A DNA stretch of 64,000 nucleotides, taken from contig NW_027192212.1 in the NCBI RefSeq assembly GCF_041956535.1, positions 409,129-473,128 on the forward strand, in the 5' to 3' direction. Below are positions 867 to 64,000 of this stretch, piece by piece. Position 1 is the stretch's first letter; every line of letters begins with the position of its first letter. The notes under the pieces were generated by a model. That model searched no databases. It was not told where the DNA came from and saw only the letters and a list, made by a program, of their open reading frames with translations. The stretch comes from Calcarisporiella thermophila CBS 279.70 (taxonomy: Eukaryota > Fungi > Calcarisporiellomycota). The translations under genes and the position numbers were made by a program.

Positions 867-1422
867 TTACAATAGGAGACACCACCATCCATCCCATTCT
901 GTGAAACCCTATGTTGTAATATTTTCGTGTTATATGCTTCCCTACTCATAAATTTAAAGTATTATTTTATTTAATAGAACCCCTTTCATTCTCTTTCTCC
1001 TATTTTTTTTTTTCAGTATTTGTATATGTATACCTCTTTGATTGGTTTTGTATTTCCTCTACTCCCCATTGTTGCATTTTATATTCTCCTCTCCGCTCGT
1101 GTGCTTTTCTTTTCATTCACTTCCACTTCCGCTTATTTACTAAAATTGTTATTTCGATCGGTCGAATAGTCATCGCCGTGCTCTCCCCACTCATGGTCAT
1201 ATTGGGAAAGCGGTGTCCACCCAATGAAGTGCATCGGACGAAAAATGTTAGGAAAATTAAAGACATATTAATTCATTAGATTACTAGAATAAAATTAAAG
1301 GTGATAGTACGAGAGAAATAGGTTTATAAGCACAAGAAGAGAATGCGAAAAAATAAACAGTGTAAGAGAAAGAGAGAGGAAAAAAAAATGCAAAAATGTT
1401 CCTATGGCCATGTCCCTCGCCC

Positions 1423-9937: not shown

Positions 9938-10009
9938 GGACGGCTAGCTCAACGGTAGAGCGTGAGACTGCAGATCTTAAGGTTTCGGGTTCAAATCCCG
10001 AGTCGTCCT
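9938..10009 (+). tRNA. tRNA-Cys(GCA)
   Basis: Cloverleaf: acceptor GGACGGC/GTCGTCC, D arm GCTC/GAGC, anticodon loop CTGCAGA, T arm TCGGG-TTCAAAT-CCCGA, U73 discriminator, followed by a T8 Pol III terminator. Confidence 0.96.
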
Positions 10010-59918: not shown

Positions 59919-62079
59919 TTTTTTTTTTGTTAGGAGTATCTTTATTAAAAAGTATCCTTTTGTGTACTTGATAAAAGAGATTAATAAACATCAGAGCACA
60001 AGAAATCCATGTAAGAGATTTGGGATATGAGGAGAGCGAATACCTTTCCTATTTTTTCAAGGATAGAGAAAAGTAGTACACGAGAGGGAGAAGGAAAAAA
60101 AAACAAAATAGAATACGGATGGTAGGATATACGGTAAAGTCGTATTGGAGTTAAGAGTTTTATGATGAAAGATATTTCATCCTAGACCTCCGTTTGCACC
60201 TCACGATTTTTTGCATTTCGTTTCCCAGTTGTTTAGCGAGCGCTATTTCGCCTGGTTGGGCGTTATCCGTTATTATCGAAAATCTGAACGATAGATGATC
60301 CAGATTACTGCATTATGGACCGTTGACACTACTTCCCGTTGGTAGCCCATGGTTTTGTGGTCTGTTCCAAATAGTCTGTCTTCCTTGGTTGATTCGTGGG
60401 CTCTCACTCAAAGAATGCGGCGGACGTAACTGTCTACTATTTATCATAGTTGATTTATGGCCGGGCATTCCAGGTAAGCATGAATAATGGTTTCCACTGC
60501 GTTGGTTGTGCACTACTTGCAAATATTATGTTGTCCTGTCCACTTACTAGTGATGATACCTCTCACCCATCTGTGTTTCAAGAGTCTCCATCTTCGTGCC
60601 CTATGCTTGGGTTCACTCGGCCGCTTTTTCCAGTACATCCAAGCTATCTCCCATCTGATGGAGTCGCTTGAGGTCTCTTCCCATTCTGGAGTGATACCCT
60701 CTCCTTTGCTTGTGCCTGACGTCCCGGGGCGAAGCCGCATTGGTCAGGATGGATGATCGACGTGATTACTCTCTGTATTCTCTACGCGAGTATTCTCGTT
60801 AGGAGTTTAATGTCCACGTTTAAGAGAGATATCGGTCGCCAGTTGCTCAGTGATTCGGCATCTCCTTTCCTCTTGTAGATTAGGACTATCGTTGCTTTCT
60901 TCAAGAAATCCATAGGGTTATCCAACATGAGGGCCTCATTAAAGAGCTGCTGAAGCATGAGGGCGAAATCATCTTCGAAGGCTCGATAGAATTCCGCCGT
61001 TAGTCCATCCGGGCCGGGCGACTTATTCTTTGGGGCCAGTCGAATGGCTTCCTCACCTCTTCTTCACTGATGGGTTCTTCCAGTTTTCCGCGCTTTTCGG
61101 CAGATAGAGTCTTGTCTACGTAATTGAGGATGATGTCTTGGTCGGTTGTACTTGTTGGCTCTCCAGTATAAAGTTCTGTGTAGAAATGGGCGGCCATTCT
61201 GGCTATTTCGCTAGGGTTCAGTGCGTGTTCCATCCGTTCTTTTCAGAGAAGTCATTGCGCTGACTGCTCTCCTCCCCGCAATGCGGCGGTGGAAGAATGC
61301 TGTGGATTTCTCGCCCTGGTCTGTCCAATTCAGGCGAGATCGGATACGTAGTGCTTCGGCCCTTCTATCAACATGGGCAGCTAGTTGGTTGCGGATTTTT
61401 TCTAGTTGGGCATATGATTCTCTGGTCCATGGGCCATCTTGGGATCTCTTGAGAGCCCTGGTTAGTTGTATTTCCTCTGCTCTAAAACAGCGTTGTCTCT
61501 GTGCCGCCTATGCGGTAGTGAGTGAACGAAATTGCTGTTTTGCAGCGTTCCAGAAAAGGCCAGTGGTCCTGAAAGATTCGCGGGTTGTGAGTAGATGATG
61601 CCGGTGAGCCTAAAGAGTGGTAGCGTAAGCTTCGTCATTTGCAAGGCTAGAGTTAAATCGCCATTGGCCATAACCAGATTTAGGAGCTGCAGTGTTCCTT
61701 ATTTCTATCTGAATAGCCATGTGGTCATATGTAGATCCGGGGGGGGTCCAGTAGAGTTACATCCGCTGTTTTTGATATTGGTGCCGTGCTGACTCAAAAT
61801 AGATCCAGTCGCGACCTTATTAGAGAGCTTCTGTGTGAGTACGTGAACTGATTGCCTTTAGATGAAAAGTGCCTGTGGACGTCAGTGAGGGAGGCCGCAG
61901 ACGTGATCATCCGAAGTCGATGTGAGGAGCCTCTGCGGTTTGGGAGTTATGTCCTCCATTCTGTCACTTTCCATCCCGTCGTCATCCATTACTTCCACGT
62001 CGTTTACAGTTCCTTCCTTGGGGTCGATGGGGTTCTCTGGCTCTATGATCTCGTTTTCTTCCAGCCATGGGTTATGCTG
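59919..62079 (-). mobile_element. Degenerate, internally deleted non-LTR retrotransposon (L1/Tx1-type LINE)
   Basis: APE remnant LTDVHRHF...FTYSH...SRLDLF; linker RSRLNWTDQGEKSTAFFHR; RT start KSPGPDGLTAEFY, NWRPISLLNVDIKLL, HPDQCGFAPGR; then deletion to the C-terminal region; AATAAA and poly(A) at 59919-59946; stops and frameshifts. Confidence 0.92.
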
Positions 62080-62096
62080 ACTGGCTGAGGACAGCG

Positions 62097-62187
62097 TTTT
62101 TTTTTTTCAACAAAGAAAACCTTTTATTGAAAAGTCTCCTGTACAGTTAAAACGGTAGGGTAACTTCTACGTCAAAATCACCAGGGT
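62097..62187 (-). mobile_element. 91-bp 5'-truncated retroposed insertion (AATAAA + A11), 17-bp TSD ACTGGCTGAGGACAGCG
   Basis: TSD copies at 62080-62096 and 62188-62204. Confidence 0.85.
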
Positions 62188-62210
62188 ACTGGCTGAGGAC
62201 AGCGGCGAAA

Positions 62211-62654
62211 TTTTTTTTTGATCAAAAGTGAATCTTTATTGTTTAAGAAGACTCAAAGTACAATTGTTACATTATTAAAAGTAATAAAATGAGAGAAAAG
62301 CTAGATATTAACGCGGTATTGCAATTCGGGGTAAGTTGATTATAACAAATTTTCTCCTCAAACGGTTAGATGAGTAATAAAACTCAATTAACTGCGGGTA
62401 TTAGGGAACGACTTGATAAGTGATATGGAGAGAGAGATATGAAGAAAGAGGTGGGGTAGTAGTAGGGACTACTGCATCAATCCAGTTCTAGAGCCGCTCC
62501 ATTAGCTCCTTTCACCGCGCCCATTTTACACCACCTGCTTCGATACTCTTCAATTTGTCGCTTTTTTCAGGCTCTTGTTAGTTCGGCTCCTATAGCCTCC
62601 TCAATATCCAGCTTGGCTCGATTGATGATGATTTCGGATGAGGCTTGAGTCCAA
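62211..62654 (-). mobile_element. 5'-truncated LINE tail (ORF2 C-terminus + 3'UTR + poly(A)), 14-bp TSD AGGACAGCGGCGAA
   Basis: TSD copies at 62196-62209 and 62655-62668. Encodes ASSEIIINRAKLDIEEAIGAELTRA*KKRQIEEYRSRWCKMG. Confidence 0.88.
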
Positions 62655-62668
62655 AGGACAGCGGCGAA

Positions 62669-63154
62669 TTTTTTTTTTTGATCAATGCCGAGTCTTTATT
62701 GTATAGGAAGACTCTAAAATACAACTGTTACATTATTATAAGCAATAAAGTGAAAGGGAAGCCAAAGTTAAAGCTTTGGGTGATATCGTAGATCGAAATG
62801 ATATGTTGGTCATATTGACTTTCAGCTCAAATAGGTAAGGGAATGGTGAAACTCAACTAACTGTGGATATCAAAGGATAGCATGAGAAGTGGGGTGGGGA
62901 GTAAACAAATGGAAGCAGAGGATAGGAAGGGGATAAGGTAGGGATTACTGCGTTATCCCAGTATCAGTGCCGCTCCGATCGCTCCTTCTCTAACCGCACC
63001 CAGCTTGCACCATCTTCTTCGAAACTGTTCGATTTGCCGGTTTTTTCGTGCTCGGATTAGTTCGGCTCCTATCACTTCCTCAATATCTAGTTTGGCCCGG
63101 TTGATGATTATTTCGGGTGAGGCTCGGGTGCTTTCGAAATGAAAGGCGATCCGA
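62669..63154 (-). mobile_element. 5'-truncated LINE tail, same family as the previous one but diverged, 12-bp TSD GACAGCGGCGAA
   Basis: TSD copies at 62657-62668 and 63155-63166. Encodes RIAFHFESTRASPEIIINRAKLDIEEVIGAELIRARKNRQIEQFRRRWCKLGAVREGAIGAALILG*. Confidence 0.88.
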
Positions 63155-63579
63155 GACAGCGGCGAAAAATGATCATAATTTTCAAAAATTTCATTTTAAT
63201 ATTTTTACATAAAAACATATTCTGTTGCGTCGAATAATAGACTAATAAGGTCTATCCTGACAATCCTCTAGCTATCCCTAAGCTCTTGATTGTCCTTCCG
63301 TAAACACTTCAGAAGGCCAATAAACGACACAGAGTGGATTGTAAAGTAATCCGGTTCTATCCCAAAACAAAAATAGCACTCTTTTATTGTAAACAAAGAT
63401 GTTTCCCTTTTATACTAAAGATAACGTACCACAAACATAAATGTAAACAAGATAATAAAAATATAATGAGGTAATCAAGGAAAAATATGTTAACCGTAAC
63501 CGTAAGCTAATAAATATACTAATAAAACCATCCCAAGAACTTAAAGAAGTGTAAAAGAAAAATAAGCCGCCAAAGCCAC

Positions 63580-63919
63580 TTGTTTTTTTTGATCAATCAA
63601 TGGAAACTTTTATTTAATTTCCATATATTACATGAAGTTAATGTCAATGGACTTAACATAACGAGATATAGATCCTTGATCGATAGACTTTCAATCGATA
63701 TGCGTGTATCGTAGTTGTCGTGAATAGCATGTACGTGAAACCGATGTAATCTTTTGTACTTATCGTAAGGGCGATCTTATCAATAATCAAGACTCAGCTT
63801 CTGATCAAGTGGATAGCAGTCACAAGCTAAGAGTAAGTGCTGGTGGGGGAAGTGGGATTCGAACCCACGCCGTTCTCATCGGCATCCCAGGGATAGTCCA
63901 CTACACTAACCCTCCCCCA
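63580..63919 (-). mobile_element. Full-length tRNA-derived SINE with 16-bp TSD AAGCCGCCAAAGCCAC
   Basis: TSD copies at 63564-63579 and 63920-63935. tRNA-like head 63918-63841 (A box TAGTGTAGTGG, B box GGTTCGAATCC, encoded CCA); ~250-bp body; AATAAA; TTGATC(A)8 tail. Confidence 0.85.
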
Positions 63920-64000
63920 AAGCCGCCAAAGCCACCTTTCCTCCTACTGCGCCATAATTCCATATTATGCCAAATCTCCTTACAACAATTCAACCAGCTT

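Follow-up and report, generated by a model that had tools for sequence, protein, structure and literature searches.

Near the end of the 64,000-nucleotide stretch of Calcarisporiella thermophila DNA analyzed here (hereafter the window) lies a 340-bp unit that raises three linked questions: what kind of element it is, which enzyme moved it, and why it came to rest where it did. An initial annotation, made from the letters of the window, had described it as a complete tRNA-derived SINE that shares its 3′ tail with a neighboring LINE family. We examined the unit itself, its relatives in the same genome, the LINEs that could have mobilized it, and the sites that it occupies.

Anatomy of the SINE copy

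The unit is read on the minus strand. It opens with an extra 5′ T, after which come the tRNA-like head, the unique body, the LINE-like tail, and A8CAA.

63580-63919, minus strand: complete SINE copy, 340 bp
63564-63579: TSD copy adjoining the SINE 3′ end, perfect 16-bp direct repeat AAGCCGCCAAAGCCAC
63920-63935: TSD copy adjoining the SINE 5′ end, perfect 16-bp direct repeat AAGCCGCCAAAGCCAC
63842-63918, minus strand: tRNA-like head, 77 nt, starting after one extra T
63908-63898, minus strand: A box of the head, TAGTGTAGTGG
63865-63855, minus strand: B box of the head, GGTTCGAATCC
about 63843-63841, minus strand: encoded CCA after the acceptor stem of the head
63583-63649, minus strand: LINE-like 3′ tail made up of a hairpin, UUGAUUGAUC, and A8; about 67 nt of it can be aligned with LINE lineage B
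63624-63600, minus strand: tail hairpin with AAUAAA in its loop
63614-63609, minus strand: AATAAA within the tail hairpin
63594-63583, minus strand: GATC and A8, then CAA, forming the SINE 3′ terminus

The outline drawn in the initial annotation holds: a perfect 16-bp direct repeat bounds the unit, with 340 bp between its two copies, and a tRNA-like head with A and B boxes lies on the minus strand. The head is composed of a 7-bp acceptor stem, a D stem, a T arm, a discriminator A, and an encoded CCA, and its anticodon region is degenerate, with a long-arm-like hairpin. The A box fits its consensus at 10 of 11 positions and the B box fits it throughout; 32 nt separate the two within the cloverleaf-like head. 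The body has a G+C content of 40% and, as had been claimed, carries no TTTT on the sense strand. The 3′ end, previously read as AATAAA...TTGATC(A)8, runs in the order AATAAA hairpin, TTGATTGATC, A8, and CAA.

ARAGORN did not call a tRNA in the SINE region, and an Rfam search with the head gave only a match at the level of the tRNA clan, at 29 bits and below threshold. Because the first program is silent and the second match falls short, the head is, as judged from its sequence, a remodeled tRNA mimic and not a working tRNA gene. When the head was compared with real tRNAs sampled from the same genome, the best identity was about 57 of 77 positions, and none of these sampled tRNAs could be recognized as the tRNA of origin. 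The CCA is encoded after the discriminator base (window 63841-63849), which suggests that a mature tRNA transcript, and not a gene, served as the template for the head.

A dispersed SINE family

The genome searched is the window's own, comprising 28.16 Mb in 116 contigs. A 25-nt pattern taken from the SINE head occurs 103 times genome-wide, as against 0 times for the reversed control, and all 40 of the candidates that were scored, from a total of 183, are full-length copies at 95–100% identity, a recurrence well beyond what chance would give. Among 37 non-redundant full copies, divergence from the family consensus ranges from 1.2 to 5.2%, with one copy at 12.8%. Every copy at the 30 loci read starts with the same GGGGGAGGG and terminates in GATC followed by 6–15 A. 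The TSDs of the non-redundant copies that were checked measure 12–20 bp (mode 16) and differ at each locus, and a comparison of 26 of them did not reveal a shared motif; a common AGCSGCSAAA core at the target likewise finds no support in them. Furthermore, the TSD sequence is present once, and the SINE is absent, in the LTR paralogues at loci L058 and L034, which constitute paralogous empty sites.

The window element is thus one copy of a tRNA-derived SINE family of about 100 members in C. thermophila, and the combination of a fixed 5′ end, a variable A-tail, and locus-specific TSDs bears the marks of target-primed reverse transcription (TPRT). Dispersed copies with one 5′ end and different TSDs, which the initial annotation had expected a genome search to return, exclude a single-copy or segmental-duplication reading, and the identification of a complete tRNA-derived SINE with its own TSD is confirmed by these relatives. 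The further claim that the insertion is recent holds in a relative sense only: BLAST aligns the window copy with the family consensus over 336 nt at 98.8% identity, the two differ at 5 of 329 aligned columns, and none of the 37 copies compared is identical to the consensus. Since no copy matches the consensus exactly, the family may be extinct. An older subfamily is probably represented at L013:2341-2624 by a second SINE-like copy, whose identity to the family is only 80% over query positions 15–312.

The probable LINE partner of the SINE

LINE-type and other retroelement fragments precede the SINE in the window and are listed here from the nearest outward.

62670-63154, minus strand: 5′-truncated 3′ end of an L1-like LINE of lineage A, 483 nt and an A-tail
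62211-62656, minus strand: 5′-truncated 3′ end of a diverged lineage-A sister, 71% identical over 62212-62645 and likewise ending in TGATC(A)n
62097-62187, minus strand: 91-nt retro-fragment with a third tail type, AATAAAAGG...TTGTTG(A)12
62080-62096 and 62188-62204: 17-bp TSD of the 91-nt retro-fragment
60456-62084, minus strand (alternatively delimited as 60711-62084): LINE remnant, internally deleted and 5′-truncated, containing the ORF1 end, EN, RT start, and zf-RVT

The lineage-A fragment at window 62672-63154 shares 98.3% identity with the terminal 483 nt of a full-length copy elsewhere in the genome (G000:C3:773404-778486). That copy spans 5,083 bp, is flanked by a 17-bp TSD, ends in an A8 tail, and encodes a 184-aa ORF1 and a 1372-aa open frame across the RT. 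A CCHC knuckle was seen in ORF1 by eye only, and a Pfam search with this ORF1 gave no match. The LINE ORF2 matches human L1 ORF2p with an E value of 1e-78 and contains RVT_1 and zf-RVT domains together with a weak match to an APE endonuclease. The best matches of one LINE protein from the genome are annotated C. thermophila proteins, one of which, VTP21DRAFT_1804, maps to contig 12 at 99–100% identity.

The window contains no copy of a second lineage, B, which is abundant beside SINE copies in other parts of the genome. The SINE tail can be aligned with lineage B over approximately 70 nt, with 84% identity over the last 60 nt: the lineage-B 3′ end reads ...ACGGAAAC-TAATAAAA-GTCTCCGT-TGATTGATC(A)n, and the SINE 3′ end aligned to it reads ...ATGGAAAT-TAAATAAAA-GTTTCCAT-TGATTGATC(A)n. 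Both tails are predicted to form the same hairpin with AAUAAA in the loop, in which a U-A to C-G change preserves pairing; the z-scores of the hairpins (−2.5 and −2.4) are modest. Upstream, the lineage-B 3′ fragments continue into an ORF2 C-terminus that is 69% identical to that of an RT- and zf-RVT-containing LINE, and RT sequence of the VTP21DRAFT_1804 type directly adjoins them. Among the lineage-B copies read none is intact, each being 5′-truncated, inverted or rearranged at the 5′ end, or interrupted by in-frame stops. Two lineage-B copies (L080:5853-6700 and L081:842-1432) carry an inverted duplicate of an ORF2-distal segment with the same joining point, and these duplicates may reflect a twin-priming-type 5′ inversion or a recurrent rearrangement.

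Comparison of the tails indicates that lineage B is most likely the partner of the SINE, in preference to lineage A, because the SINE tail aligns with it for about 70 nt and shares only terminal motifs with lineage A. The initial annotation had assigned the shared tail, and the mobilization, to the LINE family adjacent to the SINE. T-runs that lead into GATCAA are indeed found at 62211 and 62670, and the tail ends are similar, but what the SINE and lineage A have in common is limited to AATAAA, TGATC(A)n, and an analogous hairpin, whereas the longer match is to a lineage that the window does not contain.

Mobilization by the adjacent lineage A (tails at 62211 and 62670) nonetheless deserves consideration, as it would suffice that the enzyme recognizes just a hairpin, UGAUC, and poly(A), and lineage A has the same terminal TGATC(A)n and AAUAAA-bearing hairpin as the SINE. 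It is also the sole lineage with a full-length copy and a long open ORF2 among the copies read, the near identity of the window fragment to that copy implies recent lineage-A activity, and its tRNA-upstream position and TSD length (see below) are the same as those of the SINE. On the other hand, the tails of lineage A and the SINE do not align beyond AATAAA and TGATC(A)n, and the match to lineage B includes the duplicated TTGATTGATC. We therefore regard lineage A as a possible but doubtful source of the machinery and retain lineage B as the preferred partner. Given that the two lineages are related, the enzymes of both may be able to mobilize the SINE.

Integration at a fixed distance upstream of tRNA genes

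A feature that the initial annotation did not describe is the constant spacing between tRNA genes and the SINE and LINE insertions upstream of them. In the sample of loci read, the distance from the SINE 5′ end to the first base of a tRNA gene is 76–97 bp, mostly 79–85 bp, at 18 of 21 readable loci. Other loci were left out as uninformative, either because they lie at contig ends with at most 81 nt upstream, because they fall in masked stretches, or because the SINE sits behind a stacked retroelement. The SINE and the tRNA gene are arranged head-to-head on opposite strands in all 18 cases, and the tRNA-proximal edge of the TSD is situated 59–71 bp upstream of the tRNA, except at one locus, where the figure is 79 bp. 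The neighboring genes represent 13 amino-acid types, including Ala, Arg, Asn, Cys, Gln, His, Leu, Lys, Met, Ser, and Thr, and 17 anticodons. A comparison of coordinates adds four SINE-tRNA cases on contigs 8, 9, 10, and 45, at 80–87 bp. At the three remaining readable loci (L004, L005, and L017), neither a tRNA nor another Rfam Pol III gene was found nearby.

The LINEs occupy equivalent positions. The full-length lineage-A copy on contig C3 is located 84 bp from a tRNA-Gln gene, head-to-head, and truncated lineage-B copies are located 83 and 93 bp from tRNA-Ile and tRNA-Asp genes. Integration of both the SINE and the LINEs is position-specific and not sequence-specific, since the target sequences are unrelated and the distance to the tRNA is fixed. 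The sole tRNA gene visible in the window, tRNA-Cys(GCA) at 9938-10009, has no LINE, SINE, or LTR fragment upstream and represents an unoccupied target.

The genome is compact (28 Mb) and a few SINE copies lie away from any tRNA gene, so one could envisage that insertion is random or weakly biased and that the tRNA-upstream pattern merely records survival, with copies elsewhere having been purged. Selection, however, cannot account for a distance window 20 bp wide, for a head-to-head orientation without exception, or for the repeated reuse of the same nick positions that yields identical TSDs in stacked insertions (see below), and we consider this account very improbable. Position-specific integration remains the reading on which the following sections build.

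The insertion stack, the solo LTR, and a predicted tRNA gene

The SINE is the last arrival in a series of insertions near the end of the window.

62198-63167: insertion stack sharing one target, the 13-bp GACAGCGGCGAA(A/T) at 62198-62210, 62657-62669, and 63155-63167
63223-63987, plus strand: solo LTR hosting the SINE insertion, TGTTG...CAACA, with TSD ATTC at 63219-63222 and 63988-63991

Between 62080 and 63167, three LINE tails and the 91-nt fragment are arranged head-to-tail, and the 13-bp target duplication and the overlapping 17-bp one have been reused. Stacks with a shared TSD also occur at L011, L018, and L042. Positional targeting leads to such stacks when each new nick falls inside the previous tRNA-proximal copy of the TSD, and a nick made at the same distance from the tRNA each time places the youngest element nearest to the tRNA gene. 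The stack in the window fits repeated position-specific hits directed from one tRNA gene, and not a sequence-specific hotspot.

Read along the minus strand from old to young, the order of events in the window is LINE remnant, 91-nt fragment, sister-A tail, lineage-A tail, solo LTR, and SINE. The remnant at 60456-62084 is the oldest member of the stack, and the SINE, which landed inside the solo LTR, is the youngest. The 17-bp TSD at 62080-62096 ends in CCAGT, matching the truncation point of the LINE remnant (62084) and leaving a 5-nt microhomology at the 5′ junction. Such microhomology is typical of 5′-truncated TPRT products.

With the LTR removed, the 5′ end of the lineage-A fragment is 77 nt from the end of the window, and the SINE 5′ end is 81 nt from it. 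Because both distances fit, a plus-strand tRNA gene is predicted to start within about 16 bp after base 64000. The host genes of the window encode a KilA-N/ankyrin APSES factor, a RasGEF, and an ornithine decarboxylase.

Elsewhere in the genome, the solo LTR is found 9–10 nt upstream of a tRNA-Lys gene and of a Ser/Leu-type tRNA gene (L006 and L058). It exists in a short form of about 125 bp and a long form of about 420 bp, with a 4–5-bp TSD (L006:1430-1500 and 1850-1896; L058:672-1093), and has the appearance of a Ty3-like LTR element for which tRNA genes are likewise the target. The sequence ACTGCGCCATAA upstream of the SINE was considered as a conserved tRNA-upstream promoter element and rejected, as it belongs to the solo LTR. 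At L034:~1030-1075 (minus strand), another retroelement, with the tail ...CAATAAAGATCC(A)11, occupies nearly the same position in a solo-LTR paralogue as the SINE does in the window.

That the unit is no SINE at all and is instead a segmental duplication, a tRNA gene (or pseudogene) whose flank has been duplicated, or an LTR element or TRIM of the Helenus type bearing tRNA-like sequence is scarcely credible: its head is tRNA-like, LTRs stand beside tRNA genes in the same genome, and Helenus-type TRIMs exist in fungi (PMC10886601), but no tRNA is called on the head, the flanks differ at every locus, and the unit has a poly(A) tail, TSDs of 15–17 bp as against 4–5 bp, and no TG...CA ends. Helenus TRIMs were accordingly considered and rejected as relatives of the SINE (PMC10886601).

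A model for SINE mobilization

The best explanation overall, which we hold to be highly probable, is that the element belongs to a tRNA-derived SINE family that is moved by TPRT, depends on a LINE, and homes to sites upstream of tRNA genes. Pol III would initiate at the SINE head and read through the body, which offers no T4 terminator. The hairpin-UGAUC-poly(A) module of the RNA could then be recognized in trans by an L1-like ORF2 protein (APE endonuclease, RT, and zf-RVT), most likely that of lineage B, which would nick the target and reverse-transcribe the SINE RNA in place. From the TSD edges, the first nick is expected on the tRNA-sense strand, about 59–71 bp ahead of the tRNA, and the second about 16 bp further out. 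By analogy with TRE5-A of Dictyostelium, the LINE proteins may dock on the Pol III complex (TFIIIB/TFIIIC), in which case the SINE would inherit the targeting of the LINE in trans. Repeated hits at one spot would pile up elements that use the same TSD again, the youngest of them lying closest to the tRNA.

The pairing of a SINE with a LINE and homing to tRNA genes are each known, and their combination is not reported in the literature searched. We think it fairly probable, with some reserve, that this is the first position-specific SINE, a putatively Pol III-transcribed tRNA mimic in an early-diverging fungal phylum that borrows both the RT and the tRNA-gene homing of an L1-like LINE. It would represent a convergent safe-haven strategy of the TRE5 type outside Amoebozoa, operating beside a Ty3-like LTR element that homes to a point about 10 bp upstream of the same genes. 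The fungal system would then offer another, independent example in which to ask how target-primed elements recognize the Pol III transcription complex, and its assets include a compact 5-kb LINE, a 340-bp rider, a sharply defined landing site, and a cultivable thermophilic host. There are also consequences for annotation, as about 100 tRNA-like heads and stacked retro-fragments adjoin the tRNA genes of this genome, and the stacks offer a built-in relative chronology of insertions.

Comparison with known systems

Reviews of 2016 and 2018 list tRNA-targeted non-LTR elements in dictyostelids only, and fungi with LTR elements only (PMC5911963, PMC5006619). In the literature searched, we found neither newer reports of tRNA-targeted non-LTR elements beyond dictyostelids nor any work on the transposable elements of Calcarisporiellomycota or C. 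thermophila. The closest counterparts are TRE5-A of Dictyostelium discoideum and the dictyostelid NLTR-A and NLTR-B elements, which, like the C. thermophila LINEs, are of L1 type with an ORF1 and an APE- and RT-containing ORF2 (PMC5911963, PMC5006619). The likeness to TRE5-A extends to the near-fixed distance upstream of tRNA genes, the 5′ end that faces the gene, and the irrelevance of the target sequence (PMC5911963, PMC5006619), and in TRE5-A the ORF1 protein contacts TFIIIB (PMC5911963). The spacing differs, being 40–54 bp for TRE5 as opposed to about 76–97 bp from tRNA gene to element, and about 59–71 bp to the predicted first nick, in C. thermophila. Moreover, the host here is a fungus and not an amoebozoan, the ORF2 carries a zf-RVT domain, and the system includes a riding tRNA-derived SINE that is presumably driven by Pol III. 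We take the targeting in C. thermophila and that of the dictyostelid TREs to be convergent as a default assumption.

Pairs of a tRNA-derived SINE and a LINE with a shared 3′ tail are well known, those of the stringent type being exemplified by eel UnaSINE1/UnaL2. The SINEs of such pairs share the layout of the C. thermophila SINE: A and B boxes lie in a tRNA-like head, the body is unique, the 3′ end, terminal hairpin included, derives from the LINE, and TSDs are present. They differ in that their insertion is not known to depend on Pol III genes, whereas both C. thermophila partners are position-specific, and in that a fixed UGAUC followed by a true poly(A) closes the C. thermophila tail. Among fungi, SINEs with tRNA-related heads and lengths of a few hundred bp include MgSINE/Ch-SINE, Foxy, and EGH24/Eg-R1, and we know of no report of tRNA gene targeting by any of these or by AfuSINE2. 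AfuSINE2 of Aspergillus fumigatus is likewise a fungal element of a few hundred bp with a tRNA-related head; it is present at low copy number, is flanked by TSDs of 4–14 bp, and has one member that ends in ACT repeats (PMC5063351). The AfuSINE elements of Aspergillus were rejected as relatives of the present family, as they are different elements (PMC5063351).

The use of tRNA genes as safe havens by way of the Pol III machinery is also characteristic of the LTR elements Ty3 of S. cerevisiae and Tj1 of S. japonicus. The LTR into which the SINE inserted resembles these elements in its position about 10 nt upstream of tRNA genes and in its 4–5-bp TSD. Ty3 and Tj1 are driven by an integrase and insert at the transcription start site, in contrast to the C. 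thermophila SINE and LINEs, which bear the marks of TPRT and lie approximately 65–85 bp upstream.
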